64,000 bases of DNA from Bispira polyomma (GCA_965649765.1 OZ287750.1:100006001-100070000); one strand, 5' to 3'; numbered from the stretch's first letter, positions 14,327-64,000 are shown. Made by a program: numbers and translations. The notes: generated from the letters alone by a model not told the origin.

Positions 14327-14408
14327 CTATAACACAAACACAAAGCAGACAAAGTAACATTTGTAAAGGTTGATCAACATAATACCATGCAACCAGACAA
14401 AGCAATAT

Positions 14409-16949: not shown

Positions 16950-17935
16950 GACACTGAATTTTTGGAGCACAACTTGGTTTGATGCGTGCCACCACAGCTC
17001 TCACAGCAGTGTTTGAACCACTGTCCAGAAGTGCGATGGCTGGCATCAAATTTGCACGTTCCTTCTTGGAAGAACCGACAATTTATTCCAGCTGTTTTCA
17101 CCGAGGTTTTACCCCTACTGCCAACATTGCTCTTAGAAAGGCCAGACCCACTAGCTGAGGACGTTACATGACGCTGTGCATGAGCGCGCCTTACCCGGTC
17201 GACCTTTTCGACATCCGTCCAATTCAATCGGTCCATTTCCATGTTGGTTAACAAAATGGCGTGAGCGGCTTTGGCGGCGTCCCACGAAAAATTGTGGGCG
17301 TCATCCATCAGACATGCCAGATATTCCAACATGGCCTCGCGGACAGAGGACTCTTTTTGCTCTTGCGTACAGCGAACAAAACCGGAGACGAATTGGACCA
17401 AAGTAAGGTCATCATAAGTGGGTCTAACCTTTTTTACACCAGATAAGACAAAATTTTTTGGCCAATCAACATGACGTTTAACGGGAGCTTCCGCGCCACC
17501 TCTTTGGGATTTCAGTTTACCTCTCGTTAAAGCATTGAGTTGTTGCAGTTGCAGCAAGCGCTGGTCTACCTGACTCTGTAAGCCGGAATTTGAACGCAGG
17601 TAATCTAGGGAAGGCACAACGGCCTCAACCACTGGTTCACTAACACTAGGGACATTAGATACAGATTTAGAAACTGTGTTACATGCCTGTGCGCTGGGTT
17701 TACACAGCGCCGCCTCAGTAGCTTGTACTCGTTGATCCATGCTGTCCATCTTTTCATTCATCACGACCAGTTGTTGAAGTATCAAACTAGATACGGAATC
17801 AGAAACAGCAGGCACAGCAGGATCAACGGCAGCCACCTCATCAGCGACGCTGTCCAACGGATTAAATTTACATTTCTTCCCAACTGGACGTTCGTGCCGA
17901 CCAGAACATACACTACACGGGTATTCTTTAGGCAT
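16940..17935 (-). CDS. Gag-like ORF1 (331 aa) with N-terminal CCHC and C-terminal Cys/His zinc fingers
   Basis: CSVCSGRH..C at the N-terminus, coiled-coil-like segment, CRFFQEGTC..H..HCCESCGGTH..C at the C-terminus; directly upstream of pol. Confidence 0.9.
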   Translation of the reverse strand: MPKEYPCSVCSGRHERPVGKKCKFNPLDSVADEVAAVDPAVPAVSDSVSSLILQQLVVMNEKMDSMDQRVQATEAALCKPSAQACNTVSKSVSNVPSVSEPVVEAVVPSLDYLRSNSGLQSQVDQRLLQLQQLNALTRGKLKSQRGGAEAPVKRHVDWPKNFVLSGVKKVRPTYDDLTLVQFVSGFVRCTQEQKESSVREAMLEYLACLMDDAHNFSWDAAKAAHAILLTNMEMDRLNWTDVEKVDRVRRAHAQRHVTSSASGSGLSKSNVGSRGKTSVKTAGINCRFFQEGTCKFDASHRTSGQWFKHCCESCGGTHQTKLCSKNSVSKN

Positions 17936-18166: not shown

Positions 18167-20582
18167 CAGTATCAAATGCTGGTCAGTCACTGAGCACCAT
18201 TGGACTGGACCAGAATATTTAACTAAATATAATCCTGTGGTATTTCTCTCCATCTGGACAACAGGTCAGCAGTGGTGTTGTGATCACCTAGGATATGTAT
18301 GACCTGCAATTCTACATCATGATGGCTGGCCAACATAAAAATATGTCTTGACTACAAAGCTAACATACTAGTCTCTAATGCAACCATGTGTAAGGACAGT
18401 AACTACGGCCTGGTTGTCACATTTGATGAGCACTTTGTGACCAAGCCACAATGCACCCCACAATTTTAATGCTACAAATATTTTTAATTTCCCTAAGCAA
18501 GCAATATTCTGATTCTGTAGTTCAACTGGAATATTCATAGTGTAAACCTTCTGACCAACACCCCCCCCCCCCCCCCCCCCATGACAGAGATCTAACTCGA
18601 CTGTTACATTAATGGGGTTATGGTGGAAAAGGGAGACACCATTAAATAATTTAAGGAAAGTGCGAAACCAACTCTTTTGAAAACTCCTTGGAGATTGTAA
18701 AGGTTTTTGCCTTGTAATTACTTCTGAGTAGATGTAACATATGATTCTTTTTGAATCGCATGTTACATCTACGTATTTGACACATTTTAAAACGCAGAGA
18801 AGGGAGCCCAGTACACACTGGAGTTCCCTTTTCGTACAATACTTTTTACCAGCCCACTTGTCACACAAGGCTTGGATATTAATAACAATACCAAGGCAAG
18901 TAACTTTGGTGGCAGGAGGGACCAATTTCTTGTCACTTGAGGTCAAACCTAACTCAGCCAATAAGGCTTGTAACCATTGGTATGTTGAGTATATTTTTGA
19001 GGGAACCGAGGAACAAAGGAGGTCATCTATATAATTCATTATATGGTAACCTTCACCTTGCATAATGTACCTGACGCCATCAGAAATTCTTTGAAATATG
19101 GCCGAGCCATATCTATAGCCAAATGGGAGAGAACTGTCTACATAGTAAGCTCCCCAATACAGGCCTTGTAAATTGAGTTCTCTGGGGTTCATAGGCACAT
19201 GTCTGAAGGCTGATGTCTGCTTTAAATATCAGAGAACCCCTTTCCCATAGCAATTACCTGAGAGTTTATGGTGTCAATGGAAGGGTAAGTTATAAAAAAC
19301 TCTCTATTTAGATACGAAGTAGGGCAGACGGCTGCATTTACAGAATGACTTTCTGGTCAACTGAGGTCAATTATGACATGGCGATTGGCAGAACTTGATT
19401 TATCGCGAGTCATAAATGGGGAAGTGTGTAAATTTAAAATTGGTGGAGTAACATGCTCTGGGTACTGATTGGCAGAAGCGTGATTCTCTAGTGCCGACTT
19501 GAATTCATGTTGTTCAGTACAATCAAGGGGAAACCCAAATTTTTTTAAGCAATGGGAGTTCCCAGTCCCAGTAGTTTCTCAAGTAATTAGCCCATACAGA
19601 AGCTTTCAGCTGAAAAATGACAGGGACCTGGAGACCCGTGTAGTTTGGACGGCTATCCTTTCACAAGTGCTAATGGAGTACAAACACATTCATAGAATTT
19701 TGTTTCCGGGAATTATCTGAGATTTTTTGCCCCCCCCCGATGAGAGTGGAATAAATCCAAATTTCAAACTATTTTGGACGTCCCATAACTTGAAAGTATC
19801 ACACTCCTTTGCAACGTTAAGTCTTTTATGCTTATCACGCAACCTGCACATATCCAGAGCATTTATCATCCGATGAGTCAGTAATGTTATTGCTCAAGTC
19901 GTTTCTAGAAACTGACATTTTGTTGACGTTTTTATTTATACTCTTTTCATTCGACACGACCACACAGGAGGGGACCTTTATACAATCAATTAAGTTTGAA
20001 CTGTTCTCTCCCTCCCCACAATGTGTGTATAACACACCAAACCTTTTTTTTCGAGAGTGTCAATTGAAAATCATTGTTGGCACCCCTCATGTCAACCCCT
20101 TTCTGTTTGAATAATGGTTTGTTAACACCAAGGTCTTTTTTGGCGCGTCAAGCCCCTTGGACACCTCTGTTGACTTAACTGTGACACCCCATTCACACCT
20201 GTGTACAGGAGTGTGACTGTGGTTATTTAACCAGTTAGCATTACCAGAACAATGCATGGGATCAATTTTACTCTTAAGTGGTTTCTTGTCAAAAACAATA
20301 CCCCTTTGGTAAACCTACAATTTCTATTTTTGACAGATTCTTTTGCCAACACACACCTGTCAATTTTGCCCACAGCAGTATTACTTCTCGGGTTTTTTTT
20401 TTCATAACCTGATCCCCGACAAGCACATCTTTATATGATCTATGTACAATTTGGTTAGTACAAGAATACTTTTTAAAAGACATATTAGACAATAATTTAA
20501 AATCCTTGAAATATGAATTGTACACAATTCTACTATACACTGACATGCCCACTGCATTACTGCAGTGGGCCTTCAGTTTTTT
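18167..20582 (-). pseudogene. Degenerate DIRS-type RT/RNase H
   Basis: LPFGYRYGSAIFQRISD, NYIDD, CDNQAVV, ADLLSRW; several frameshifts. Confidence 0.92.
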
Positions 20583-21598
20583 AACCTTTTTTGAACACAA
20601 TTTTGTTTGATGTTTGCCATCACAAGTCTCACAACAATGTTTAAAGAGTTGCCCATCATCCATCAGGAGGTTCGGTGAGAGGCATTAAATTTGCAAGTGC
20701 ACTCCTGAAAAAATCGACATATGACACCTTGAGCTTTATTCTGAACCTTTGCTTTTCTACTAGAGCCAGATTTGTTATTAGCACCACTGTTGGCACCACC
20801 CGATATGTGACGTTGGGCATGAGCCCGGCTTATCCAAATGACCTTGTCTACATCGGTCCATTTAAGGCGATCCAGCTTCATATTAGTCAACAATATAGCA
20901 TGAGAAGCTTTAGCGGCTGCCCCAGAAAAATCCGTGGGTGTCATCCATAAGGTTGAATAAATATTCAAGCATGGCTTCCTTAATCTCAGAGGACTTTCGT
21001 TCTTGCACACATCTTATAAAGTCCGAAGTAAACTCAACCAGAGTTAAATCATCATAGGTTGGCCGAACCTTTTTGGCACCCGATAATTCAAAATTCTGAG
21101 GCCAGTCAACTGCCTTTTTAATGGGGGTATTGGTGCCACCCCGTTGGGATTTCAGTTTACCTGCTCCCGTTAACTGGTTGAGTCACTGTAGCTGCAGTAA
21201 ACATTAGTCAACCTGAGTTTGCAAGTTTTCATTCGACCGCAAAAATGTAAAGCGTGGACCACCGCCTCAACCCCTGGTTGAACTGCACTGGGAGTGACTA
21301 CATTTGATGTGACATTAACACTGCTATTAGGTAAAATGCTACCTGCCTTACTGGTGCTTGGTGGGCACAGCGCCCCCTCCGTGACCTTCATACGTTGATC
21401 CATGCTGTCCATTTTTTTATTCAGCGACTGAAATTGTTGTAAAATTAAATCAGATGTCGAGTTTGACTCACCAGCAATACAAATAACCGTGGTCACATCA
21501 TCAGCGATGCTGGCCTCTATAAATCGACACTTTTTGCTCACAGGCTGTTCATGTTTTCCCAAACAAGCATTGCACTGGTACTCTGATTTAGGAGTCAT
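20573..21598 (-). pseudogene. Degenerate gag of the older YR element
   Basis: MTPKSEYQCNACLGKH; GKLKSQRGG; CRFFQECTC; HCCETCDGKH. Confidence 0.9.
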
Positions 21599-22016
21599 AA
21601 TTAGTAATAAATAAAACAAGTTTTAAAACAGTAAAAGGGTACTTAAAGCACCAATCGTAAAAAGCACTGTCGTTGTTATATTTTTCCTTTGGTTTAATGA
21701 ATGTTAATTTTGTCTTTTGGTTGAATCATTTACATTATGTTATTGTTATTTTTGCAATTGGCATGTTAATTAATTACTGGTTGTAACAGTAGCTATTACT
21801 TTAGGATGAAACCCGTATATTGCCTGAGGACGTTCATACCTCTGCTGAAATAAGCAATAAAGCTCTTCCCTAGAATTTATTAAGATTTATTAACTGGTAA
21901 AATCTCTGTATATTTATAATCATGGTTTAAGTAGAGTGGAAATTATGAATCTATTTTTACTCTGTAATTAGATACTCTTCTGTTTATAATTGTTCCATAC
22001 AAGAAAATGTTGCCTG

Positions 22017-23150: not shown

Positions 23151-26100
23151 TATATTATATGGCTGTTTTAATCACTTTGCAAAGAAATATTAAACTTGTA
23201 AATGGTATTTGCATATAAAAATGATTAAAACGGTCACTAAAGACATATTTTGAGGCTGCCATAGTGGATTCCCAGGGTTAAAACATTTAACTGAGGTATA
23301 ATTTACAGGTTACTCATTTGTGTGTTTACGTTACTAAAGCCTTAAGGAAACATTTGGCAAATCTTAAATATACCAATCAGCTAGCCTGGGACATTGTCAA
23401 AGAGAGCTTTTTGTAACTCTTCTTGCAACTTTCAAAACACCAACCTAGTGCTCTCACAACATATTCTTTTAACTTAGTGAGATTTCAGGTAAAGCTAATC
23501 AGTCAGGGATTAGCTTGCAACACTGTCAGCAAAATTTAGTGTTCTGTAACACTTCCTGTAACTTTGCCCACCGCACACTTATCGTCAAGAGAAGCTAATC
23601 AGTCAACGGCTAGGCTGGGACACTGTCATGCAATTTTTTCAACTCCCACCCAGTGCTGTCAAAAAAAATTTACACTGTGAAAAAGGTTTAAATAAATTTT
23701 TATTTGTTTTTCATAAGTGATTTTGACAATTCCATGTACTTGGTTTATTTGTTACATGTCATTTTGCAACCAATAGCCATTTCACCACGGCCATTTTGGG
23801 ACCTTTGTAGTTCTAGAAATAATTCACCACTTGATTTAGTTTCTGACACATTTTTACTGAATGAAATACAACAAATAGTGGATACACATTATTTAAATGC
23901 CGAATTTGTTTAATGTGTACACAACATACTTTGTTTCAGTGCATCAAAAAGCCTATAGGACATACAATAGTCTAAAACTATTTGCCAAGTAGAGAACCCA
24001 GGCTGGGTGTAAATTGCAAATCAGATGAGACCTCAATAGAGGTAATATACATGTATTTCACACATTTCTACCTTAAATATTTATTAACTGAATATTAACT
24101 GAGATATCTTAAGTAACAGAAATATCTTGTAGATAAAACTACAAACAAAACAAATATAAATGCTTGAATAATTAAAGTATTAATAAGTTATATAAGGCAG
24201 CGACCCCAGCGTAGGGGTTTACAGTTTTGGGGTACCAGTCTTTTCTAAAATGTATAGCTTCATTGACTGCAGATTTCCCTATACAAGGATGTGCCATTTT
24301 AATGTCCGCCTTTTAAAAACAATAGCCGTACACAGAACATCACTTTGAAACAAATGTTCAAAATTTCTACAGTTTTACGTTGTTCCACACTGTTGTAGAG
24401 AATTTTAATCTGTTTTGTCTGTTTTATATCATTACTGAATTTTATCATGCCTTCGTCAGTGAATTGTTCTAAATGTTTGGGCCAGTCGGGGCTGAATGTC
24501 AGTTAATGGTTAATGCTACTACTGCTGACATTGACCAAGGTGAGGAACTCAGAGATGCTGGTCTGGCTCAGGATGTGGGGCTGAGTACTGTGTCAAATCA
24601 AATACTTTTACAGCTCCAGTCCATGAGCCAGATAATGGAAAAAATGGACTAGCATGTGCAACTGAGGCGGCGTTGGCAGCGGATGGAAACAAAAAACAGG
24701 CCAGTAATTTGACTTCTAGCAATAGCTCTGTAAACAATACGGCTGAAATAGCTACACCTGTCAATGAGGTACAAAATGTTATACCTCATTGATGTTATAA
24801 ATAACACAAAAATTCAAAGCCAGGTAGAACTTCGGTTGGCTAATTTGAAGCGCCTCAACGAAACCCCCAGTCGGGGTAAGCTTAAGTCTCAGAGGGGGGA
24901 GGGGTAGATGTCATTAAACGTGTTGTCGAATGGCCACAAAATCGTGTCCTTTTCGAGCTAAGCCCACATACGACGACTTGTCTATGAGCCAATGGGTATG
25001 TCGGTTCACCAGGATTATTCAGGATGAGAAATCAAATTCTGTTAGGGAACTAATGCTCCAATACATGTCCAAATTTATGGAGGACTCGGAGGATTTCTCG
25101 TGGGAGGCAGTGAAGGCTTCTTACACTGTTGTGCTCATGCACATGAAAATGAACAAGCTTTTGTGGTCCGACGTGGATAAATTAGACCGTTTACGAAGGG
25201 CTCACGCTCAGAAACAGGTGTCCAGTAGTAGTACTACTCCTGCTAATGCCAGTTGAGGCAGTAAAACCAGTGGCATGGCCAAACAAAGTGCAAATTGCAA
25301 TTTTTTCCAAGATGGGTCCTGTAAGTTCCCCAGTAGTCACAAGATAGGGAATATGTATTTTAAGCATGTCTGTGAAACTTGTGGGGGGAACCCGTAAAAC
25401 TAATGCATGTACCAGAAAATAGGTAAACGTTGACACAGTGGGCAATTACCATTTGGGTAGTATGTTTTATAATTCAAAATTTCAGGAACAGCATTTACTG
25501 GAAAAATCAGTTGTAAATAAAATGTTGTTGTATTACAGAGGTAAACAGACTCGCTGCACGTACAGCGACGCTGTTTCAGTGGGAAGTAAAATATGTCAAA
25601 ATAAAAGTGTTGGTGAACAAGTCCTGAAAAGTGACCCAAAGCCTTTCAATGCAGTAGAACTCCATAAGCAAACAAGGTGTCAAAACACCTCAGTGAAAAC
25701 TGTCTAAAGGTGTCGAAAATGGGTGTCCATGTCCTGGGTGAAGCCCCCTTTGTCTCGGCCACATGAAACAAAATAAATACTTTTGAGTCGAGACAAAGGC
25801 CTTCAACCAAAGGCGTGTCAAACAGAATAAACCCATGAACGAGATAGGAGGTCAGATTGTGTTGCATAATAGATTTCTTCCACTCTGCCAAACCACTGTT
25901 GAACCCCGGCAGCAATGGGGAGGGGGGGGGGGGGGGGGGGGTAACAGAACAGGGTGTTGATATTGTGCCTAAACAAAAAGCCTGTGTTAACTTTGTGTTG
26001 CACACGGCTGGTATCAAAAAATCAAATTCAATTAGTGTCACCAAAGATGATGGGGACAAATACTCTCTCGAATTTATAACAAAAACGTAACAAGCGAGAA

Positions 26101-26387
26101 CTGTTGGGCAAAGCTCAATTAAATGATACCTACATTCAATGGAAAGCCCAAAATGAAGTTGAATGTGGCTTTACGCCCCTGTCCAATTTAGGTTGTAAAA
26201 TCTGTGACTTTGGTAACACTGACCACAAATTCATAATTTTTGAAATGCACAACAAATTAAGACAAGATGGTAGACAAAATTTTCAGGGCCTCCAGCTTGT
26301 TGTTGAGTCGCAGTTAAATGCTGACAAGTGGGACAAATACCTTGAGAACTACTGTTACTGGCAACTCCTTTTGCTCATTAAGTATCT

Positions 26388-26877
26388 AAAGCAAACATAA
26401 AGTTGATAAGAGACAGGCTAGTTATAAACAACAAGCCAAAGTCGGACATTTTTTAGAAGAATCCTTTAGATCCCACCATCTCTACAGGGGAGTCCATAAA
26501 TTATGATGTTATCCACCATTCCAACCCAGTTAGCATCAAAGGGAGTACATTCCAGGGACATTACTATCCCATACATTGCATGGAAGAAGCGGTTCAAGCT
26601 TTGAGAGCATTACATCTAAACAAGTCGTTGTGTAAAAGTCACCACTTCGTCTACGCCTACAATTACTGCGATACTGATGGTCAACTGATGGTCGGGATAC
26701 TCAGATGATGGTGAGTGGAAAGCAAGCAGTTTATTGAAGGGAATGCTTGACGCTAGCAAATGTTCTGATGGAATATTGATGGTGACCCGCATACACGACG
26801 GACCAAATCTTGGTAAGCAAAGATTTCACCTGCTAGAAAGAGTTGCTAAAGAAGTTCTAGACAATGCCTCTGTATAA
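26388..26877 (+). pseudogene. LINE ORF1 C-terminus fused to an IMPACT/Yih1 (UPF0029) domain
   Basis: KANIKLIRDRLVINN, then KGSTFQGH, HHFVYAY, GYSDDGE, LMVTR, GPNLGKQRF; one stop and one +1 frameshift near 26695. Confidence 0.85.
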
Positions 26878-27643
26878 ACGTCACTCTCTAGACATTAGAA
26901 ACCATTATATAATAAGTTTTGAACATTCTAGTAACAATAAAAACTAAGTTTTCTGTTAACAGGACATATTAAATACATTCATTACATGTTTAAAAGCCTG
27001 CTTGACAGACTGTTTATTTTTCAAAATACCATGTTTATGATGACATTTGCGTTTGTGAATATAATCGATAGGGAAAACCAGTTCTGCTGTATTTTTTTAT
27101 TATAATCAGGTTTGCTGTGATGATTTTGATTTGATGAGTTAGCTTACAACTTTTTCTTATAGCGTAACCACAGCTACCAAAAAATACATGTATGTCAGAT
27201 GATGTTGATTCTTGATTCGGTATGCTAGCATAGACTATTATTTTCCCCAGTTCTACGTGTATAAACGTCACTCTCTAAACATTAGAAACCATTATATAAT
27301 AAGTTTGAACATTCTAGGAACAATAATAACTAGTTTCTCTGTTAAAAGGATATATTAAATACATTCATTACATATTTAAAAGCCTGCCTGACAGACTGTT
27401 TATTTTTTCAAAATACCATGTTTATGATAACATTTGTGTTTGTGAATATAATCGATAGACAAAACCAGTTCTGCTGTATATTTTATTATAATCAGGTTTG
27501 CTGTGATGATTTTGATTTGATGAGTTAGCTTACAACTTTTTCTTATAGTGTAACCACAGCTACCAAAAAATACATGTATGTCAGATGATGTTGATTCTTG
27601 ATTCAGTATGCTAGCATAGACTACTATTTTCCCCAGTTGTACA
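26871..27643. repeat. Tandem duplication of about 387 bp in the LINE inter-ORF spacer
   Basis: Near-identical units start TGTATAAACGTCACTCTCTA at 26871 and 27258. Confidence 0.97.
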
Positions 27644-28399
27644 TGAATGGCAGATGATATATATACTTAAGAATCAATATTGCAATTTTTATGTTTTAAA
27701 TTTAATTAACTTCTAAACATTGTTAAATTTTGAGTTGGTATGTGAACATACGACTGTGTTGGTGTTTTTTTTTTTTGTTGGTTTTTTTTTTTCGAGTTGT
27801 ACATGTAAATAGTTTGCCGTTAATATGTTATTGAGAATAAATATTGAATCATGGACAGCTAGTAAAACAGCACTAATTTGTAATAACTTACAAATTGGAT
27901 TTTTAAAAATTTTATTGTCACATATGGTGGATACCTCATGACATAAACTATTGAACATGTGAAATGTACATAAGCTCTCTCAATAGTTCACAGTGTCACT
28001 TTTTTATTTTTTGTAGAGTATTTTATTTTGATAAAACATTCATTCTGTAAAGAACGCCTTAATTAAGTTATGTTAGTTTTTTTTTTCTTCTTTAGCATCC
28101 TTAGGTTAAGAAATATGTGTTTGTTTTTCAGAAATGCATTAAAAAGGTGTTACCTTCTTGCAATTATTATTAAAATGAAAGGTATAATTTTATTTTTTTC
28201 AATAGATATGTGGTCATCTTTTGTTAGTTGTAGCAAGTCAATAAATATTAAATATAAGGTACTAATGTGGTCTTCAAAGTCATCAATCATTGAAAAAATA
28301 ATGGTTAAAATAATTAATCGTCTACTCCAGTCAAAACAAAATATTTTGATGCTGCTTATTCTAGAGAGTGCTGTGTGTTATTACCGCAACTTTTTCCGA

Positions 28400-31300
28400 A
28401 ATAATATTAGGGTGTTATCTGCAAACTGTCAAGGATTAAGAAACAAACATAAAAGGATAGATGTTTTGGCATACTTCAAAGAAAGAGAAGCTGACATAAT
28501 TTGTCTCCAAGATACACATTGGATCAAAAGTGACTTGAGTCTGTGGAATGGCAATTGTTATATTCATGGGTCTAAAACCAATGCGCGTGGTGTAGCAATT
28601 CTTTTAAAAAGTAATTTTGAATATACTGTATTGTCAAGTGAACAAGACACAAAAGGAAACTTCCTTTGTTTACCTTAAAACTTAGCTCTATGACAATAGC
28701 TCTTATTACAATATATGCCCCAAATAAGGACACTCCACTTTTCTTTACAAAACTGCAGAATGTTGTGCAGAGTAATAATTTCGATCACTGCATAATATGT
28801 GGTGATTATAACTTAGTGATCAATCCTGCACTTGATACATACGGATATAAACATATAAATAATTCAAAAGCTAGGCTAACAGTACTTAATATGATGACCG
28901 ATTTTGATTTTCTAGATATTTATAGGCAACTACACCGAAACAATCGCCGATATACATGGAGGAAGAGAACTCCCCTAAAACAGGCCAGGCTTGATTACTT
29001 TTTGGTGTCCAAGAATATGTTAGATATAATAATTAAATGCGAAATTAAACCTGGTTATAGGTCAGACCACTCCATTATAGAATTAGAAATTGTGTTGAAC
29101 CATTTTAAGGTGGGAAAGGGGATTTGGAAATTTAATAATAGCCTACTTAAAAACATTGATTATTTAAATTTAATAAACAAAGTAATAAAAGAGGAAATTT
29201 TAAATTATGCGATACCTGTATATGACTTAAAATTTTTTGAAAATAATTACAATGATATTAATTTCATGATAGACAATGATCTCTTTCTTGAGGTACTGTT
29301 GCTCAGGACAAGAGGGGAAACAATTAAATTTACAAGTGCTGTAAAAAAATTAAATGCCTCTAAAGAAAAAGATCTGATGAAAGATATTGAGTATTTGGAA
29401 ACAAATATAGACTCCCAAAATTGTAATTTACAACTGCTATCAGATAAAAAAAGCCGAATTGGAATACATTAGAGAAAATAAAATGAAAGGGGCACAGGTT
29501 AGAGCTAGAATACAGTGGCTAAATGAGGGAGAAAAACCCTCCAAGCTATTCTGTAATGTAGAATCGAGAAATTATGTTGAAAAAACAAAATTACAATTAG
29601 ATGATGGTTAAACAATTTATGAGCAAAAGGAATTGCTACACCACGTCAAAACTTATTATTCCAATTTATTCAGCAACCGAGACATGTATCTTAATGTAGA
29701 AAGCTTTGATTCTTTGAAAGAGGTTCAATCAGAAAAAGTCACTTGGGTGGTTCTGTATCTGTAGGTGAATTGCAAACAGTTTTAAAAAAGATGAAACATA
29801 ACAAAACGCCAGGTTCTATATCTGTAGCTGAATTGCAAACAGTTTTAAATAAGATGAAACATAACAAAACGCCAGGAATAGATGGTCTTACTGTGGAATT
29901 TTTAATAGTTTCCTGGGGAATGCTAAAGTTTTTTATGGCTAGAGCAATCAACTGTGGTTTTGAAAAAGGTTCAATGTCAATAACTTTGCGCCAATGCATT
30001 ATAGTCTGCTTACCAAAAGGAAACAAGAACAGAAATTTTATGAAGAACTGGCGACCTATTTCACTAATTTCTGTAATTTACAAACTAGCTTCGGGTGTAA
30101 TAGCTCAAAGATTAAAAACAGTTTTAGATCTTATTATATCAAAATCACAATCTGGCTTTGTACCAGGGAGGCAGATAAGTGATAGTACCAGATTAATTTA
30201 TGATATAATGAATTCAGCAGAAGTAAAAAATCTCCCTCGACTTTTAATGCTTCTAGATTTTGAAAAGGCATTTGACTCCATTTCTTGGATATTTCTGTAT
30301 AAAACTCTAGCAAGGAATTTATCAAGTGGGTAAAACTCTTTAACACCAACATCAAAGCACATGTACTTCCATGTGGTACTTTATCTGAAGAAATTTCTAT
30401 TGAAAGGGGTTGCAGACAAGGTGACCAACTTTCACCATATTTATTTTTGATAGGGGCTGAAGTACTGTCTTCATTACTAAAAGTAAATCCAAATATAAAA
30501 GGTTTTAAGTTGAGAAACGAAGAGATCAAATTAACACAGTTTGCAGATGACACAACCCTTATACTTGATGGATCACAGCGCTCTTTAGAGACAGCACTTA
30601 ATATACTAGAAATATTTGGAAATTGTTCTGGCTTAAAAATGAACATGGAAAAAACAAAGGTGATCTGGATTGGTCAGAAATGTTTCTCTAAGGAAAAATT
30701 AAAAATAGAACACACCCTACAATGGGGCAACTCAGAATTTTCTATGTTAGGATTAAATTTTTCAACCAATTTAGGTGATATTCCAATCATAAACTACTCT
30801 GAGGCTTTAGAAAAAATTAAGAAGGACATGGTAAATTGGAGAAATAGATATCTCACACCTTTTGGGAGAATATCACTTATTAAAACCAAATTTTTGTCAA
30901 AACTGATACACCTCTTCATTACCTTGCCTGCACCATTAGGTATTTTGAAACAGATAAATAAAATGATGTTTATATTTATATGGAATCATAAACCTGATAA
31001 GGTTAAACAAAAAACCTTATGTGGGGATTATTCAAAATGGGGTTTGAAAATGATTAATATATTCCATTTTGAAAAGGCATTAAAAATAGCTTGGATACGA
31101 AAGACAATCTATCAACCAGAAGTAGGATGGAACAAGGTATTACACGAATCAAATAGTAAAGTAAAAAAATTATCTGGACTGGGTGGAGAATTAAATTCAA
31201 TCTACTCGAAAACATTGAAAAACGAGTTTTGGACCATTATTTTTGGATACTGGAATGACTTCTGTTCAAAAAATCAACCCTCATCAAATGATGAAATTTC

Positions 31301-32040
31301 AGATTCATGTGTATCGTATAATAGTCAAGTATCAAAATGTATTCTATATTACCCAACTTGGTACAAAAAGGGAATAAGCCTAGTGGGTGATATAATAAAT
31401 GCAGAAGGAACTGTAATTAGTCATGCAGAATTTAATAAAAAATATAACATTTCTACAAATATTTTAGACTATCACAGGTTAAAATTCTCGGTTGAGAAGT
31501 TCCTGATCAATATGGGCAGTAAAACTAAATTTCACACTTGATATCAAGGTTTGGGAAAATATTTTTAAGGCCAGTTTCAAGTCCATTTCAGATAACACAT
31601 TGATATGGTTTCAATATAAAATACTTTTTAACATTTTGGATACCAATCAATATTTGCATAAGATAAACGTAATTGATTCAAACTTTTGCAATTTTTGTAA
31701 GCGACATCCAGATTCTATTTACCACCTTTTCACTCAGTGCACTTATGTTGACAAATTGTGGCAAAATATATTAGATTGGATCTGGAAAAAGTTGGCTCTT
31801 AAAATAGAGCTAAGCGATGCTAGAAAAATTTTAGGGTATGAAGAAATGGACTTAAATTTCTGGCCACTGAACTTTTTGCTACTAGTACCAAGGTATTACA
31901 TATTTTGGTGCTCAAAGAAGAAATTTCAATTGAACATATATTTCCTTCAGAAAAAATTTAAAAATATATTTTTAGAACAAAAACTTTTGTCGAAAGTAAA
32001 TCAAACAGAACAAAAATTTGACAAGAAATGGGAAGTATGA
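28400..32040 (+). pseudogene. LINE ORF2: APE endonuclease, RT and C-terminal CCHC (frameshifted)
   Basis: VLSANCQGL, LQDTH, GDYN, RLDYFL, SDH; KTPGIDG, NWRPISL, LDFEKAFD, QFADD; CNFC..HLFTQC. Confidence 0.96.
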
Positions 32041-33262
32041 GAAAACCTAATAGTGTAAAAAATTGTTGTTTTTTGCTGAACTTCTGCATAAGATGACCAG
32101 TGAGAAAGTGAGCATTATAAAAAAAAAAAATTATTAAAAAACATGTTTTTTTTTGTTTTTTTTTGTGATTTGGTAACCAGCATCGTAGTATAAACTGTTG
32201 TAAAAAATTTATTGCATTTATTAAGATGTGCTTACTGTATATTTGTAATATTTTCTTATTTTTTTTTTATACAACAAACAGAAATAAAAGTATAAAAAAA
32301 AAGGTATCGCTTCCTGTTTGTATGTAGGGACAACATAAATCAGTCAGAGAATGCCAACCAAAGTTCTTCGAGTTGTTTTCCTGAACACGTGGAAATGTAT
32401 TTAAAAGAAGAATGCCACTTTGGGGCCATTCTAGGTCCTTTCACCAGCCCACCGATTAAAAACCTGCACTGTTCGCCGATGATGACTCAGGAGAAATCCA
32501 GCTCTGCTAATAGGTTTGTTATTATCGATTTAAGCTGGCCACATGGTCAGTCAGTTAATGCTGGGGCCTCTCCCACTTGCTATCTAGCCACAGAATTCAT
32601 ATTGTCTTATCCTTCCATAGATAAAATTACCAGTGAGGTCAGTAAGTTGGGCAGAGGTTGCCATATATATATAAGGTGGACGTAAGTCGTGCATTCAGGC
32701 ACGTCCCCATTGACCCCGGAAATATTAAATTTTTGTGCTTAAAATGGAAGGGCTTCTATGTAGATAAATGCCTTCCCTTTGGCCACCAGAACGGGTCCAC
32801 TATTTTTCAAAGACTCTCGGACGCGGTCAGATATATTATAAGGGCAGAGGGCCAAAACATTCACAATTACATGGATGATTTTTTGGCCATTAATTTGCCC
32901 AGCAAAATTGGGCCTAGTTATAACCGGTTCCAGGCGCTATTACAAAAACTTGGTCTCATGGTTAGTAGTAAAAAATTAGTGCCCCCCCAGCACACGTGTT
33001 GTGTGCTTGGGTATCCTCATTGATACTGAAACGTTCTCTAATTCTATACCTGAAGACAAATTATGTGAAATTCGAGACAAATGTCTGTCTTGGCAGGAAA
33101 AAACTCATTATACTAAAAAAGAGTTACAGTCGTTGCTAGGCTCCCTTCTGTATGTGGCTAAATGCATTAAGTATGCACGAGTTTGCCTTAACAGGATGCT
33201 CCAATTACTGCGTGATAATTATGGAAAAACCAGATTTCTCGTTACAAAGGAATTTAGGAAAG

Positions 33263-33490
33263 GACAAACTTGTTCAATTGTTATTTACGTGGACAGGATT
33301 GTGGTCAGGCCGGATTCGTTTCATTATTGTATTATTGTATGAACTATTAAGAGTATCTCAGTTGACTGTAATTGTATAATTGTTATTTTAATTGTTAAAT
33401 AAATTTGTTAAGTGAAATTTTTTGTCTTTTCCTGTTACAACTTGAAAGCAACCGGTAATTGCTACCGTGCTTGCTCCCGTGACCATAACA
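33263..33490 (+). mobile_element. Probable LTR 3' fragment replacing part of the YR-element RNase H
   Basis: Non-coding AT-rich insert with AATAAA ending in ATAACA; pol homology stops at EFRK and resumes at WTSRSDIE. Confidence 0.5.
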
Positions 33491-33714
33491 GTGGACCAGT
33501 CGGTCCGATATAGAAATTGTGGTCATTCACATTATGGGCGTCAAAAACAAAAATGCAGACTTATTGTCACATTGGGATAAAACCAGTAATAATGACCAGT
33601 TGTTGGCAGAATTGGCAGGTCCAGTGAAATGACTGCAAGCAGATGCCAATCGGCTTTGGGTAGACCCTACAATATAACAAGAATATAATTAAGAATAACA
33701 TAATTGTGTTTCAG

Positions 33715-34677
33715 GTATGCACCCTGCAGAGTCACTGCTTGTAGGCGCATTCATTATCCATTTGCTGCCTCAACTGCCAGGGCTTATGACAGGATGTTTA
33801 GGCTGTTTGTTTCCTTTGGGACGATTATGAATTGGCCCCCATCTCAGGTGAATGTATTTAAACTCTTATGGTTTCTTGAGTTCTTAAATTATAATTCCAT
33901 GTCAGCCTCACAAATTGATAACAACCTGTCAGCCGTGAAAGCTAAGTGCAATCTGTTTCACATTAATGTAGAGTGTTTTTCTGACCCGATAATATCATAT
34001 TTTAGTCGGGCTCTAGCTTTACACAAACCATTGCAAGCTAAACTTAAAAGCCTGTTCGATATTCCCTTGATCAAGGCCCTTGTGTTAAATTGTGATAGCA
34101 CATATATGGGCCAGATATGCAAGGCAATATGTCTCACCAGTTTTTTCAGGTTTTACGTCTGTCAAACTTGTGCCCACACTCAGTGGCGGCTTTTTCCCTT
34201 CTAAAGCATTTGGCTAGAGGTGATTTTAAAACTTGGCTATGTTACTCTATTAATAAAGTGGTCTAAAACCATGCAGACGAACAATGCCATTAAGCTTTTG
34301 ACAATTCCAGTGATCCCTTTATCCAGCCTGTGCCCAGTAGCTGCCTTAAGGAATGTCCTCGCCTTAACACCCCCTGGCTCCAACATGCCTCTTTTTCAAT
34401 ATAAAAAGGGCTGCTCCTGGGAGGAGATGACGGACACCCATGTAAGGCATCTTTGAAGAATGTTTTACAGCTTCTGGGTTGCCAGCACAACAATCTTACT
34501 TTCCATGCTTTCCGGCATTCAGGTGCCATGTTTGCCTTTAATAATAATGTCAACATACAGGACATTCAACGACATGGCACCTAGACGTCGGATTGTGTCT
34601 AGAGGTACATAACCGATTCGGCCCATGCTGTCTCTCCGTTTGCAGACTCCTTTAGATTGTCGCTACAGCACTACTAG
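33715..34677 (+). pseudogene. Tyrosine recombinase (degenerate)
   Basis: STARAY, KWSKTMQ, FHAFRHSG; acceptor ttgtgtttcag at 33714; stops and frameshifts. Confidence 0.9.
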
Positions 34678-49249: not shown

Positions 49250-52200
49250 TTTCAAATTGTCTAAGCCTAATAACCTTTCATCAGAATCAACCACATCACC
49301 AAGAGTATTGATGCCTCTTTTTGCCCAATTGGGGAAGAAAACCTTGGTGTTAGAGATGTGTTTCTTAAACCCAATTATACTACTCCAAATGTCACTGTTA
49401 GACTTAACCATTTGTATTCTGCACAGGTTTTTCCGATTTTCGAAACGGTTTTTCAGATGGTTTAATTTGTCTAAAAAATGTAAGACACCAGTTATATTTC
49501 AATTAATCTTTTTCTTCATCTTTTAACTTTTTTTTTCAAATATGATACTTAATTGGTTCCCCTCTAATTCTTAAAAAAGAGTTCTTAAAACATGTCACTA
49601 TAAACTAACAATTGGATATCATTGCTGTTTTGTAAATAACCTAATTATATAAATAGGTAAAGCTTATTTAATTTTTTCTTCATTAATAACTTTATTCATT
49701 AAATATAGGTAATCTTTATTTTGCAATCATATGTTCCACACACCTTTTCCACACTTAAAGTTGTTCAAACTTATGTGCATCTCAATCAAGATTGGTCAGA
49801 TCGATAGCTACCAGTAATACTAAATTTTTTAATAATATCCATCATAGTACTGGTTACCAAGAAGTAATCTTGCCTTGCTTGCTTGAAAGGATTTTTGTCT
49901 CTCCAAAAAAGAACCAGTCTGTTTATAATTGTTCTAGATTTTGGGTTATTAATATGTACATATTATAGTAGTCTTTAATTTTTTCAAAACATTTAGGATT
50001 GTCTTGATTTGGTGCATATAGCCAATTTAAATTGTGCCACATTAGATTAGTAATTGTAACCAATTGCCATCTGTATTTTTATTCACTTTAATAACTTTGT
50101 ATTCAAAGTTATTATTTAACACCACAAGAATTGGTTCTAAGACCATGTATGTAACAATCTGGTCACTAAATGTGTGTCATTTTAAGTAAGATGTGTATCT
50201 TATAGAAATACTATGTTTGCACCTGTGTCCTTCAAAAATTTAGGTACATCTATTCTTTTCTCACAAGTAGGAAGACCTTGACAGTTTGCAGACAACACGT
50301 TAATTCCATTGGCTATATCGGTCATTTTGTATTACTGAAATGTTTTTGCAGACAATGACATATTAAAAGGTGTTATGTTTCTAAAAAGAGCCATCAAGTA
50401 CATCAAAAGGAATACTTCTGAAATAAATCATGTTACACATCTCAAATAGCTGATGAAAAAAGGATTTTTTTTCAACTCTAAAAACAAATCTTTTTATACA
50501 GTTCAAATAATACATTTAAACACATTGTACAAACAACTTATATACATTCATAATTTATGGTAAAAAAAAACATTACGTAAATAGGAAAGGAAACAAAACA
50601 TTTAAGAGAATTGCAAAATTATCATTTTAAACTCGGTTGTAGCATTTAATAAGAAAAAAGTAAGATTTGATTGAAAAGGTTTGTAAACACAATGAACATT
50701 TCATACATTACACACAAATGTAGTTTTCAAATAAAATTTTAAAAATGTAATCTTTTAAATTTTCAGTTTGGTAGCATGTATAGCCTTTGTATACTGTAAC
50801 ACTATGACACTGTCAACAAACAAAGTAAATAAGAAGACACAATAACAGTTGTTTTACTATATATTCAATGATAATAGTACTTATAGGAGGAACTGGTAAA
50901 ACAAAAACGGATGTAATATAGGTTGTGTTATTGGTAAGACAACACATGAGATCTACACAATATATGTCACAACTGTAAATATATTTGATCTAATAATGAA
51001 TCTGTGAGGTAAATCATATTTAAAATTAGCATTATTTTTTTCCCTATTTGATTAAGCTGAATGAATACAGTTATTATCCACCTTTTTGTTTTATAATAAG
51101 GTACAATTGTTTTTAATAAGGTACAATTTTTTTTAAAATCTAACAGACGTTTCTAAAATTATGAGTGGTTTTCAAAGTGAGATGGAACTCTGTTATAACA
51201 AGCCCCCGTTTGGATTGATACTTGAATATTTATAAAATTAAAAAGGTATTTTTAGGCAAAGAAATTTGACAATATTTAACAACATCTTATAAAGCCAACA
51301 GTTTGCTAGTAGTGACTTTTCATAATGAATTGAAATTATGCATAAAAATATTTATTCAACCTAATTATACATAATCACTTGCTACTTAATAGCATACAAT
51401 AGCTTTTTCTTTTGCGAACAGACCAATACAAATTATATAGATATTAAGATATAATTTTAAAAGATCCATACAGACAATGAGTATGATAAATACAACTATA
51501 TATGACTACTTGCTCTTCAAAAAATTACAACACAAAACTATTATTTATAGTATTGGTTAGACATGATCAACACTGTCTGTTCAAAATACTTCCAGGTACC
51601 ATATGAAAACATAATTGGAGATGTATATTAATTATAATCCAGTTGTCTTTTTTAAATATTAAAGTCTAAACTTGTACAGGTAAACCATAACTAAAGCAAG
51701 TACTGACCAGACTAGCAACACACTAAATGATGACAGAAATTTGAACACTAATAAACTATAAAGACAAGAATATCATGCCATAGTAGCAAATATATATCAA
51801 TGTTGTTTATATATAAATTTTTAAGTACAGTTTAAATGTCAAATAGTCTAAACATTAAGGTGTTGTCAACATAAAAAGGTTAATTTTGCACTGTGGCAAT
51901 AAATTTTCATTAAATTATGTTCAGACTACTTAAAGTCTATTTTGCACATCACTTGCTTATTTATTGTTTATTGTATCAGTGACCGCCCCAGTCTCACAGT
52001 ACCCCCACTCGACTTACACAAATTGTGCCACATTGAAAATACTCCCTCCAGTTTTGAGATTACATCTATTGCCGTAGTTATAATTAGGTCTAACCTTTTC
52101 TTACGGATATTTGGTCCCTTATGACACCTAGATACTGCCAGAAAAATGTTGAGGAGGGGTTTATCTTGGAGCAAATTTCGTAATATCTGGCTTGACCCAA

Positions 52201-52425
52201 CTTTCCCATCATGACTATAGCCAGTGGTAACTGTGGTCCCTTGATCTGAGCATCCGTCTTCATCCAGGGAATAGACGTAGCTAATGTGATGTGCATTTGA
52301 TAATCTGGGTTCTGCAGTAGTGCTGCGTGAGCAGCTTGTGCCTCAGAGATAGAATTTATTCTATGTACATGACCTTAAAATCAATATCCTTTCCACATCG
52401 TAGGACCAGGTCCGGAGAAATTATG
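49250..52425 (-). mobile_element. Second, older L1/Tx1-like LINE (IMPACT-domain ORF1 end, spacer, internally deleted ORF2)
   Basis: ORF2 starts at 50325: MTDIANGINVLSANCQGL..KRIDV..FL*DTH; C-terminal WAKRGINTLGDVV; RT core missing. Confidence 0.8.
51968..52425 (-). pseudogene. IMPACT/UPF0029 domain remnant (LINE ORF1 end)
   Basis: KGY*F*GHVHRINSISEA; NAHHISYVY; GYSHDGK; NIFLAVSRCHKGPNIRKKRLDLI. Confidence 0.78.
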
Positions 52426-52559
52426 TTACATTATTATCTTGTTTCATACATATGATATTACTTTTATTCAGGAACATTAGTTACAGTCTGATCAATTTAT
52501 ATTATTCAATTAAACCAACTGTAACATTACCTACTATTGTCTCTTTGAACAAACTTCAT

Positions 52560-53990
52560 TATGGTAGACCCAATGGTGGGTGCGGTATTCTGTGGAAAAA
52601 AACACTGATAGCTTTTATCTCTCCTATTATGACTCAATCTAACAGACTATGCACTGTGAAATTGTTAGTTGGTAATGTATATTTTTATTTAGTTAATTTT
52701 TGTATGCCAACCACTATTGTGTCAATTGTTAATATAGAAGTGCTTTAAATTAAATAAAATCGTTGATTAACGGTAACCACTGCAAAAATGTTATTATTGC
52801 TGTTGACTTCAACACTGATTTTTGTTAACAAGGAGCAAATGTTAATTCACTGAAGTCTTTTATAGAAAATAAACATTTAAAAAGTGCAATGTTGAATAGT
52901 GTAAGTGATGTAAAGTTTACCTTTGAAAGTAAATCTAATTTATGTCAGTCCACTATTGATCACATTTTAATTGATGATAAACTCTTTAATAGTATAAGTG
53001 TGTGTGATTCTATCCACAGTGGATATAACTTGTGTCAGCAAGGACTTTGATAGGGTTGAGTATGTTAAACTGTTTTCACTCTTATTTGACAGAGGTTTGA
53101 ATTTGAATTTGGATATTTAGCGTCCACTCTAGTACCTTTCATTGGGTTATATTAGGACGGATAGTTGGAACTGCATAGTTGGTCAAGGTTATGCACTGAA
53201 ACCAGCGGCCTACAGAAAGGAACTACCACCTTTCCCACATAGACATCGACAGGAAGCAAATTCACGACCATTCGATCTCCAGAGGTAAGAGACCATTGAT
53301 TGTGAAGCGCAATGCTTGGTAACCACTAGGCCACCGCTGCCCCCTAATTGACAGAGGTGTGTGTCTGCTTACTTGTAGGTTGTTGGCTTATATGTATACA
53401 AATCAAACTTCGCGTGTTAAATGGGGTTTAAGTATTTGGGTATGCTGATGATGCCGTTTTACTAGCCTCTACTGTTAATTCTCTGAAAAAAAGACTACTT
53501 AATATTTGTAACGAAGTTGGTGCTAAATATAATGTATTATTCAATCCTTGTAAATACCAACTAACCATAGGGAGTGTTGTACATAATAAAATTATGAAAT
53601 ATAACTCTAGTGCCAATCACTTGGGTCATATTATAGATGTAAATAAGAATAATAAGTCGGCAGAAGAGGATATTTATAATCTAATTTTATCTTTTAATGG
53701 TGTTTTGTCTAATTTTGCATATGAACTTGTCGATGTAAAATTCAAACTATTTGAGACAGTTTGTATTTCCTTTTACGGTTGCTAAATATGAGATTATAGC
53801 CCTAATTCTATAGCTAGATTAGTAGTCAACTGGTATAAATGTGTGAGAAAGTTATTTAATATATCCAAAATGACACAAAGTAATTATCTTTTAATCTGTG
53901 ATGATATACCAGTGGAGCTACAGCTTTTCAAGTGATGTAATAAATTTATTAATCATTCACAGCAGAGTGACAATAAGTATGTTCTCTCAA
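52560..53990 (+). mobile_element. Highly degenerate APE-RT LINE fragment
   Basis: GRPNGGCGILWKK; DFN; STIDH; FDRVEYVKLF; GYADD. Confidence 0.75.
53097..53344 (-). mobile_element. tRNA-derived SINE family A, copy 2
   Basis: Reverse complement of the family A sequence; TSD TTGACAGAGGT. Confidence 0.9.
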
Positions 53991-59636: not shown

Positions 59637-60572
59637 TTGAAAGAAGATAGAAGACAACAGTCAAAAGATTCCTTTGAGGTAGAGAGCTGTACTAGCTGTA
59701 TCTGCACTAACTTTATAGTGACTATTACATTTCTAAGCTATGCAGCTGGATGTATTGGTACCCAGTTGACAAGAGCCAATGTTTTACAGATTAACTCAGT
59801 ACGCTATGTCATCATGTCAGTGTTGACCCTGAGTATAGTCTTCATCTTCAAATATCCTCTGAACATAAAATCTCATCATTTTTGGAAATTAGCAGTATGC
59901 ATACTGATGCATCAAATCTATGGCACGGCATATTACTTTACTGCTTCATTTATGCCTGTAGGGAATTTTGATGGCATTCAAAGTGCTTTTTCGACTGTGC
60001 TGGCAACAGCATATGATTTTTCCAAGGGGAAGATTAACAAGTTGACCACAATGAGTGCTGTGTTTGCTGTTTTAGGCGTCATCCTTCTGATGCAGCCATG
60101 GAATGAAAAAAAAAATATCACTCTGCACTCATCCCATGTGAGGTTCTGGGGAACATAACACAACTCTTCATCCCAAATAGTATAAATGGGAGTGATACTG
60201 GTGGTGAGCAAGCACATACATATGTCCATTTGAAGAACGTTTTTGAAATGTATCAAAACACCATTGGTTACCTGCTGATGTTTACCATTTCTACCACATC
60301 TGTTATCAGAGGGGTCCTGATCAGAGATTTAATCAAAGAGTACCCAGTCGCACCATTTTTGAATGCATCTCACTATCACTGCCAACCTGATGTGATCACA
60401 TATCATCGACACACCATTTTTTGACATTCCATCAGGAGCTTTGTGCTTTGTGATCATTTGTTACTTTATAACTTTTGCAGTGTCTGGAAATACATTGTCC
60501 TATTACTCATATGGGCATACTTATGTATCCACTTACGCAGTCATTGAAATTCTGTTTGCTGTGTTGTTGTAC
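59637..60572 (+). pseudogene. SLC35G/EamA-like (DMT superfamily) multi-pass transporter pseudogene
   Basis: Multiple hydrophobic helices, LQINSVRY, ASFMPVG, GVILLMQP; frameshifts and stops after 60150; SINE inserted at the 3' end. Confidence 0.65.
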
Positions 60573-61422: not shown

Positions 61423-64000
61423 CATAACTTGAGTTTAAGGTAAAGTAGTAGAGGTCCAAAGAAGCTAATCACATGCAACATGGTTTATCGGCGATCAATT
61501 TATGTATTTACATTATCAGTGCCTCGTACTTTATATTTGTAGCTGTGACCTTAACAGATGACCTTGCAAAGTTAGTACTTTAAGCAAGAGAAGCAGTTGG
61601 GCTATATATATTTATTTCTACTTACTACACTATGTACAGATTGTAAAATAGTTAACATTTGTGAAATATATAAGGCCACCCTATGAGTTTAAGTAAAGAT
61701 AATTTAAAAGCAGTTTAAGTTTAAGCAAATAACTTTACGTTAACCTTAACTTACTATACGTAAACTGGTTTTAAGGTAATCTTAACAGTTTAAGTTTTAA
61801 CTTTAAGAATTGATATATGAGGTTACCTTTAATTTGGAAGTTAAGGTGGCCTTAAGATTTGATGAAGTTTGAAGTGTAAATTTTAAAATGTAAATTATTT
61901 AGTGAAAGAAGAGCACCAAAGCCCAACTTAGGATGTAGTGGTTGCAGCGAGTCTGGCCTGGAAAGCCAGGGCTACCTGGTCTGAAGCTGAATGATTTTGT
62001 GTTATATAACTCCATACGCAATCTGAGGACCAGATACCATGGCTTTGAATATCTTGGATTGGGACGTGAGAGTTAAAGGCAAAAGTGGCTCCTGAGCGAC
62101 TAAATGAATGAAAAGTGATATTTGTGTCACTTTTGCCTAATCTACTTAGAATAGTTTCTCCTCAATTTGCTATCTGTTAAGGGCAACCAAGTGCCATTAA
62201 CCTTGATCTGGAAAAGAGGTTTGTTCTTAGAATCTGGGGTAATAGCCAGTAATACTTGTAAGGCTCGAACCGGACAAATAGTTGAATTGTCTAAGACAGG
62301 GATTTTAACCACTTTGATGGTGTCTCTATTCTGTAAAGTTTTTGATTATTTAATTATTATGTGGGCACCAGGTGGGGCGAATAATATGTCAGCCCTCGCT
62401 AGTTGTTGTAGTGGTGTGAAGGCAGCATAACTGTGTGGTACCAGATTTGAAATTCTTCAAAAGGAAAAGAAAGCTGTAAGGTAGGCAGCCTTATTTACCT
62501 TACCCATGTACATGAAATCACATACCAGAGCTATTCTTGTGAGTAATTCTATATCAATAATGGAATTAATTTTTGCTTTAAAGGGTTTTTGGAGCACTAA
62601 TGCTTTTTGGAAATATGTTAACCTTTGATCAGAGAAAGAAGTTGTGTCCTACAGGGAACAATTAGCCTTAATAGCAGCCAGATAATTAGCTATTGATGTG
62701 TGGGTGACTTTATTGGACACTAAGCATTCTAGAAATGCCAGCAATATAGGAGTTGTGATTTGAGTAACAGGTAAATTTGCAAAGCAACAATATGCTAGAA
62801 AAACTCTGAACATCGTGAGATAAGCTTTTTGAGTGGAAGGCTTAAATGCTTGTTGAGCTCTCAGGGCTGCCTTGGCTGCAGCTTTTCCAACCCACCCTTG
62901 GAGACCTGAAATAGAGTTTTCTATATAGACCAGTCAAGGTCCAATATTTCATCAGAGACTGGAACCCATATGGGTTGTGGGATGACTTGTTTAAGTTTAC
63001 TTATATTATTATCAGTAATGTCCCATCTTGACAACAAATCAGCTGTGTAGTTGTCCTTACCAAGAATGTGTACTGTTCTGAGCTCAATGTCAGCCCTAGC
63101 AATTTCCATAAATATATTTCTCGCCATTGCAGCTAAAGTAAGGCCGTAAGTTTTACCAGAGTTTAAAATAGAAACGACTGCTTGATTGTCGCAATGCACT
63201 AATAGTTTTTTACCTGTCCATTGTGATATCCAAACTCGAATTGCGACAAGTATGTTAATCATCTCTAGATGTACTATAGTGTAATTTTTGAAACCAAGGG
63301 GAATTGATTTGGTATATACTTGATTGTTACATCTTGCACCTATACCCTGAAGGCAGGCATCTAACTCAACCTGTTCTGTGACAGGGGCATGGTAAAAAAA
63401 CGCCATGCCATTAAATGTTGGTAAGAAACTCTTAAACCAATTTTAGTCTTGGTGAAATTCCATATTCAGGTTCATTTTTGTGGGATTGTTAGCCGAACGA
63501 AGTGTGTCTAACATTCGGTTTAAGCTTTTTACGCATTTTGATACATATAACAATGATCCCAGCAATGATTGTAGCTGATTCTTAGAACACATTTGCTTAT
63601 TCTCCCAAGATTTACAAATAGCTTGAATTTCTTGCAATTTTTTGTCAGGAATAGATACAGTGTAGTCTTCTGTATTTATTAATACACCTAAACAAATGAC
63701 TTTTGTACTGGGTTCTACTATTTTCTTTTGGCTTAAAATGAAACCAAATTTTTTGAAGATGTCCTTTAAGGCAGTAAATGAGGCATCAATTTTGTTACTA
63801 GGGCCAAAGCCTATGACGTCATCGATATAATTTATGACGTCATAACCACGTGACGTCATGACATATCTAATTGCGTCACTGAGTCTTTGAAAAATGGCAC
63901 TGATGTGGCGATAGCCAAATGGGAGGCACGTGTCTATATATACATCTTCCAGTTTAAGTCCTAAGAGTTCATAATCAGCTGGGTCAAATTTTACGTGCCG
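61423..64000 (-). mobile_element. Degenerate Ngaro-like YR retrotransposon (RT/RNase H 64000-62921, YR 62905-61928), continuing beyond the window
   Basis: LPFGYRH, NYIDD, LDACL, CDNQA, ADLLSRW; YR with RISNLVP, FHSFSRSGAT, HGIW. Confidence 0.92.

Follow-up and report, generated by a model that had tools for sequence, protein, structure and literature searches.

A dead L1-type LINE fragment in Bispira polyomma and the UPF0029 (IMPACT-type) domain that closes the ORF1 protein of its lineage

The window analyzed here, i.e., the whole 64,000-nt stretch of the Bispira polyomma genome (GCA_965649765.1 OZ287750.1:100006001-100070000) to which all coordinates refer, contains two long interspersed nuclear elements (LINEs), a family A copy on the plus strand (copy 1) and a family B copy on the minus strand (copy 2), both with an IMPACT-like coding piece ahead of the second open reading frame (ORF2). 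We have found that copy 2 is a dead fragment of an L1-superfamily element, and that its IMPACT-like piece is the C-terminal domain of the ORF1 protein (ORF1p), a UPF0029 domain (IMPACT ancient domain), and no stand-alone upstream module. The first-pass annotation had described copy 2 as a second, diverged LINE repeating an IMPACT-spacer-ORF2 architecture; the linkage that it noticed is real, but the IMPACT peptide cannot be maintained as a module separate from ORF1. Our explanation as a whole, to which we assign a probability of roughly 0.85, is that UPF0029 is an integral domain of ORF1p that would have been captured once and would be needed for retrotransposition; the role linked to the ribosome or to translation that we prefer for it is considerably less certain.

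Copy 2 had been placed at 49250-52425, an extent that genome-wide homology replaces by 49127-52380 (minus strand). The minus-strand six-frame translation, which covered 48900-52700, reproduced the peptides quoted earlier for 52425-51968, although they occupy two frames separated by a frameshift near 52310, and stops lie near 52380. The short piece before the frameshift ends in GHVHRINSISEAQAAHAALLQNP, and 51971-52342 is a stop-free piece of 124 codons that contains NAHHISYVY, GYSHDGK, NIFLAVSR, and GPNIRKKRL. Its match to the Pfam UPF0029 profile (PF01205; E 0.0035, 17.8 bits, profile positions 30-104 of 107) is on its own below the 27-bit cut-off; the piece shares 69% identity over 88 residues with residues 345-432 of the intact family B ORF1 (tblastn), which scores 49.9 bits, and the proposed identity of the 52-kb peptide as UPF0029 is thereby upheld. 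In the same tblastn alignment, the core motifs of copy 2 appear mutated, from DDGE to HDGK and from LGKKRF to IRKKRL. Pfam, tblastn, and blastn together delimit the ORF1 remnant to 52046-52380, where family B residues ~321-432 are kept, so that the copy starts almost exactly where the UPF0029 domain starts. The original stop codon of ORF1 has been lost, and thus, the frame continues to 51971. At the nucleotide level, 52380-51800 aligns to one family B genomic copy at 81% (blastn).

The remnant is followed by a non-coding inter-ORF spacer (50317-52045, minus strand) of ~1.65-1.7 kb, with 26% GC, 37 ATGs, and a longest open stretch of 61 codons, which holds ~875 bp (51680-50804) missing from the younger subfamily. 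The ORF2 signature VLSANCQGL..KRIDV..DTH, announced as lying some 1.6 kb downstream, was found at 50331-50203, ~1.65 kb from the ORF1 remnant, with the VLSANCQGL start at 50316. From there to 49545 extends the N-terminal remnant of ORF2, an apurinic-type endonuclease (APE) plus linker that corresponds to residues 3-317 of the intact 1266-residue ORF2 of the relative L064 (tblastn) and carries several frameshifts and stops. The junction of an internal deletion of ~1.77 kb lies at 49490-49498: the matches that flank it are 1768 bp apart in relatives, and the tblastn query jumps from residue 317 to residue 934. This deletion has removed the reverse transcriptase (RT; ORF2 residues ~337-926), leaving a C-terminal fragment of ORF2 at 49127-49489 (residues ~934-1053, by tblastn and homology). 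Family B homology stops at 49127, and the zinc-knuckle end of ORF2 and the 3' untranslated region (UTR) are absent. Copy 2 is thus 5'-truncated, deprived of its RT and cut short at its 3' end, and it has no function itself.

The intact condition of these elements was recovered by searching the whole 1.035-Gb genome by DNA for relatives of both window copies. Family A has genomic copies that are 94-96% identical over a stretch comprising UPF0029, the spacer, and the beginning of ORF2, and family B has dozens of dispersed copies with ~80-85% identity to copy 2 that keep the linkage between UPF0029 and ORF2. In the genomic relatives of both families, a long open frame terminates in the UPF0029 part. 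For family B, this intact ORF1 encodes 432 residues (L052:541-1836:+) and is present in several genomic copies; for family A, it encodes 408 residues (L022:1888-3111:-). The whole length of the UPF0029 profile is matched by both, with 55 bits for family A, and neither has a Pfam match to the RWD domain at E up to 1. Only the UPF0029 part of ORF1p is visible in the window because both window copies are 5'-truncated.

The fold of the family B ORF1p was modeled with AlphaFold from an alignment of 14 sequences (mean predicted local distance difference test score 77.7). The model has a disordered N-terminus, a single long helix (72-143), a beta-alpha-beta-beta-alpha-beta unit followed by a helix and a hairpin (147-278), and a compact alpha/beta domain (314-431). 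A Foldseek search against the PDB matched it to Yih1, the yeast IMPACT homologue (6bqi; E 1.1e-7), and to the human LINE-1 ORF1p trimer (2yko; E 1.9e-7, template-modeling score of 0.64 by target, 193 columns), as well as to TT1547 (2cve) and YigZ (1vi7). The intact ORF1p is therefore predicted to be of type II and to consist of an L1-type coiled coil, an RNA recognition motif (RRM) and a C-terminal domain (CTD), with the UPF0029 domain added C-terminally.

The two window copies have little nucleotide identity, as had been noticed (their similarity is limited to a 29-bp match and a 271-bp match at 65%). In protein sequence they belong to sister families that share a common design, in agreement with the first-pass annotation: an alignment of the family A and family B ORF1s gives 36% identity over 333 residues and is continuous through the coiled coil, RRM/CTD, and UPF0029. 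In a set of 14 ORF1s drawn from this genome and public assemblies, the phenylalanine of FQGH, a histidine, DDGE, and G..LG..RF are invariant, motifs that are also common to Yih1. Between lineages, UPF0029 has an amino-acid identity of 0.55-0.60 and RRM plus CTD one of 0.61-0.65, versus 0.22-0.49 for the N-terminus, the coil, and the linker; the conservation of UPF0029 is on a par with that of the RNA-binding core of ORF1p. The ratio of nonsynonymous to synonymous substitution (dN/dS) of the UPF0029 part is ~0.16-0.17 where dS is unsaturated, which points to purifying selection on this domain in these elements.

Maximum-likelihood trees were built for five lineages from UPF0029, from RRM plus CTD, and from the first 600 residues of ORF2. 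All three trees separate {A, L065} from {B, L061, L064} with a support of at least 0.998, so that the congruence between APE/RT and IMPACT trees that was to be looked for is found in these lineages. The UPF0029 domain has the same position in families A and B and has diverged together with the rest of the element.

The same order of ORF1-UPF0029, spacer, and APE or APE-RT was found in seven other contigs from other samples. In L064, an ORF1 of 436 residues is followed by a spacer of 1271 bp and by the 1266-residue ORF2; the corresponding values are 415 residues, ~980 bp, and 1273 residues in L065 and L066, and 454 residues, ~1.2 kb, and 1135 residues in L071. L070 encodes an ORF1 of 514 residues and, after ~2.1 kb, an ORF2 that begins with the same VLSANCQGL motif. 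In L061 the ORF1 has 421 residues, the spacer ~3.1 kb, and the ORF2 is broken, split by an in-frame stop. With the multi-copy linkage in both families and the congruent trees, these contigs support the view that the IMPACT-spacer-ORF2 layout is the inherited design of a diversified LINE lineage, and they bear out the earlier proposal of a clade-level design rather than a one-off transduction.

The lineage has many relatives. The PF01205 scan of the genome yielded 427 candidates, of which 150 were scored; all 150 were above the cut-off, none of them with an intron, and many sit in open frames that are 400-540 codons long. Among 5.8 billion proteins, a word-based search identified 26 relatives, and among 1.84 billion cluster representatives, 574 were retrieved at E<=1e-30 by HMMER searched exhaustively. 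Among the best 150 of these 574 clusters, most cover profile positions from ~40-90 to 416, i.e., RRM plus UPF0029. Some ORF1 relatives stop short of the UPF0029 part, and these can be either truncated gene calls or true relatives without the domain. The nearest ESM Atlas clusters contain PF01205 and are labeled Eukaryota, most commonly Mollusca; these taxon labels are the sole basis on which the design apparently occurs mostly in molluscs. The Tx1 group of the L1 superfamily has been reported to be common in molluscs.

The complete ORF2 of L064 matches human L1 ORF2p with E 1e-95 over residues 7-959 and R2 with 1e-27, and its greatest similarity to human L1 ORF2p places these elements in the L1 superfamily. 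The proximity of the RT to that of L1 ORF2p holds for the family, as represented by L064, the RT itself being deleted from copy 2. Likewise, the endonuclease is degenerate in copy 2, and copy 1 and the relatives match Pfam Exo_endo_phos. The ORF2 architecture of the family is APE-RT-zinc-knuckle.

The distance from the ORF1 stop to the ORF2 start is 1-2 kb in every lineage examined, except for the 3.1 kb of L061; in intact copies it amounts to roughly 1 kb. The GC content of these spacers is 25-30%, T outnumbers A in them, and they contain 22-40 ATG triplets and lack long open frames. A sequence comparison between the spacers of different families revealed neither detectable nucleotide similarity nor a conserved ORF, and on these grounds a hidden third ORF or a sequence-detectable conserved RNA element in the spacer was dropped. 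Most lineages have an in-frame Met 5-10 codons ahead of VLSANCQGL; unlike them, the open frame of the family A ORF2 (L002:3476-5323) has no ATG before this conserved start, which hints at an AUG-independent initiation of ORF2 in family A. Simple scanning or short-range reinitiation looks unlikely as a way to reach ORF2, and the candidate routes are then internal entry or a separate transcript.

UPF0029 is an integral and conserved part of ORF1p, and the question of what it does there can be approached from its best-known relatives. Yih1/IMPACT uses its RWD domain to bind GCN1, and its other reported associations are with actin, ribosomes, and Cdc28 (PMC4503747). Taking the reported ribosome association as a starting point, we propose that the UPF0029 domain would hold ORF1p either at the ribosome engaged in translation or on the mRNA of the element itself, and that this retention would favor the cis-assembly of the ribonucleoprotein (RNP), or the translation of the distant ORF2 across the long spacer. 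The domain would also be needed for retrotransposition. By analogy, a translation- or ribosome-linked role of UPF0029 in ORF1p is the mechanism that we prefer, tentatively, as one possibility. The more specific version, in which a mollusc-centered L1 lineage would have co-opted UPF0029 as a ribosome- or translation-docking module that keeps ORF1p on the ribosome translating its own RNA and so enables both cis-preferential RNP assembly and the translation of an ORF2 placed 1-2 kb and dozens of AUGs downstream, is more doubtful.

About as likely as the translation-linked role is a nucleic-acid- or ligand-binding one, in which UPF0029 would extend the CTD of ORF1p as an additional nucleic-acid-binding or chaperone module, or as a small-molecule-binding or enzymatic one, with no link to the ribosome. 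ORF1p is itself an RNA chaperone, and the invariant H, DDGE, and G..LG..RF are common to Yih1 and YigZ, where they cluster on one face in a way that suggests a conserved ligand (PMC4503747). However, the papers examined report neither a ligand nor an activity for any UPF0029 protein, and we can regard this alternative as possible at best. We consider it unlikely that the domain acts on the host stress response (GCN1/GCN2/eIF2alpha) in the way that IMPACT does, sustaining translation during retrotransposition. IMPACT/Yih1 inhibits GCN2, and the LINE domain belongs to the eukaryotic IMPACT type, but both GCN1 binding and GCN2 inhibition depend on RWD (PMC4503747); the LINE proteins have no RWD match, and thus, a direct control of GCN2 is less likely.

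Regarding the origin of the domain, the ORF1 profile search retrieved the eukaryotic IMPACT homologue 6bqi with E 2e-21, compared with 1.1e-3 for TTHA1053 of Thermus and 5.6e-3 for YigZ of E. coli. In addition, an RWD-plus-Impact_N gene from an unrelated eukaryotic contig shares 32% identity, in its Impact_N part, with the LINE UPF0029 domain. In sequence, the LINE domain is closer to eukaryotic IMPACT/Yih1 than to bacterial YigZ, and its likeliest source is a host IMPACT-type gene, captured without RWD. We infer a single capture before the split of families A and B, in which RWD would have been left behind. An independent gain of UPF0029 by each family, through a recurrent capture of host domains by LINE ORF1s, is very improbable, since the domain follows the CTD at the same position in both families, the two ORF1s align continuously across this junction, and the split in the UPF0029 tree is that of the RRM plus CTD tree and of the ORF2 tree. 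The weakest alternative, a host IMPACT pseudogene or transduced host exon lying by chance upstream of a LINE at this locus, could be imagined from copy 2 alone, an isolated and stop-riddled UPF0029 piece 1.65 kb from ORF2, but it is refuted by the recurrence of this linkage, with the domain as part of an intact ORF1, in the dispersed copies of family B, in family A, and on the contigs from other samples. The lack of an RWD match in the ORF1s and of introns in the scored genomic matches also speaks against this alternative, which retains a negligible probability.

Several points weigh against our explanation as a whole. The synonymous distance is saturated between families, where dN/dS is mostly not computable, and the congruence test covers just five lineages. 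The single origin is proposed for families A and B, a part of the UPF0029-bearing LINE ORF1s of the genome. Pfam does not recognize RRM or CTD in the intact ORF1s (Transposase_22 was undetected by sequence), and these domains are assigned from the predicted fold. Concerning the mechanism, the function and the binding partners of the UPF0029 domain were still described as elusive in 2015, and the ribosome binding of Yih1 was mapped to a region that overlaps the linker, and not cleanly to the ancient domain (PMC4503747). The mechanistic part of our explanation is therefore one that we infer.

The UPF0029 domain seems to be used in contexts beyond LINE ORF1 as well. An unrelated eukaryotic contig (ena:ERZ25073789; L068:505-13231) contains HEPN_DZIP3 and Impact_N genes in repeated form. 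It also encodes a 569-residue protein (P0124) in which UPF0029 occurs three times in tandem, and has an RWD gene that precedes an Impact_N gene.

Copy 1, the family A element of the window, spans 26385-32305 on the plus strand and begins at ORF1 residue 246. Its ORF1 part (residues 246-408, including UPF0029; 26385-26874) has one stop and one frameshift, and the UPF0029 domain is recognized in two pieces (Pfam 19.6 and 31.3 bits) with 90-98% identity to the intact family A ORF1. The spacer (26875-28405) measures 1.53 kb with 28% GC, and 26871-27642 is a 386-bp tandem duplication (2 copies, 94% match) that is present as a single unit in several other family A copies. ORF2, the 3' UTR, and a short A tail occupy 28406-32305, and the ORF2 has a few breaks and matches Pfam Exo_endo_phos, RVT_1, and zf-RVT. 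A short internal duplication was observed at 29441-29710 in this ORF2, where residues ~354-443 of the reference ORF2 are matched twice. Copy 1 is inserted whole within a DIRS-like element, with GTATC on both flanks as target duplication.

The DIRS-like retroelements of the window comprise 13338-17935 (minus strand) and fragments at 18368-21619, 26050-26384, 32306-34204, and 62921-63859, and they encode a gag-like ORF, an RT/RNase H of 853 residues, and a tyrosine recombinase of 355 residues. Just upstream of the truncated copy 2, at 53096-53343, there is a repeat of ~250 bp with 6485 first-look genomic candidates, probably a short interspersed nuclear element (SINE) or a miniature inverted-repeat transposable element (MITE). 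In this otherwise transposon-filled window, likely host exons were found at 8920-9447 (minus strand) and 59637-60158 (plus strand), with matches to Sulfotransfer_2 (E 7e-12) and, weakly, to an EamA-like transporter.

UPF0029 is conserved in all domains of life. Its retention in a large and diverse selfish family, where it is joined to an RNA-binding chaperone and precedes an unusually long spacer, points to a role linked to RNA or translation. These LINEs provide an assayable system for UPF0029 and, if the docking reading were true, they would give a natural handle on the function of the domain. For annotation, hundreds of intronless "IMPACT-like" frames in this genome, and probably in mollusc genomes too, are retrotransposon ORF1s and not host genes.

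A literature search retrieved no report of the UPF0029/IMPACT ancient domain in a LINE ORF1, and the domain is unmentioned in a gastropod LINE survey, a bivalve transposable-element survey, and a pan-eukaryote L1 survey. Thus, the family is apparently an undescribed variant of the L1-type LINEs. Accessory domains of LINE ORF1 reportedly include esterase, PHD, and zinc knuckles; UPF0029 resembles them in being a host-derived domain added modularly to ORF1 and differs in that the search returned no report of it among them. With regard to IMPACT/Yih1, the C-terminal domain of the LINE protein is homologous in sequence and fold, and the invariant motifs (H..AY, DDGE, and G..LG..RF) are kept in the intact ORF1s. 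In contrast to IMPACT/Yih1, the LINE domain has no RWD, forms a fusion with a retrotransposon RNA-binding protein, and exists in hundreds of copies; without RWD, the known mechanism of competition for GCN1 should not apply to it.

The closest known system is the L1 superfamily. The family shares with it an ORF2 with APE, RT, and a C-terminal zinc knuckle (zf-RVT) that is nearest to human L1 ORF2p, an ORF1p predicted to fold like human L1 ORF1p in its coiled coil, RRM, and CTD, and 5'-truncated insertions, copy 1 having in addition an A tail and a short target duplication. In mammalian L1 the inter-ORF spacer is tens of bases long. The family differs in the additional C-terminal UPF0029 domain of its ORF1p and in a spacer of 1-2 kb with 22-40 AUGs.
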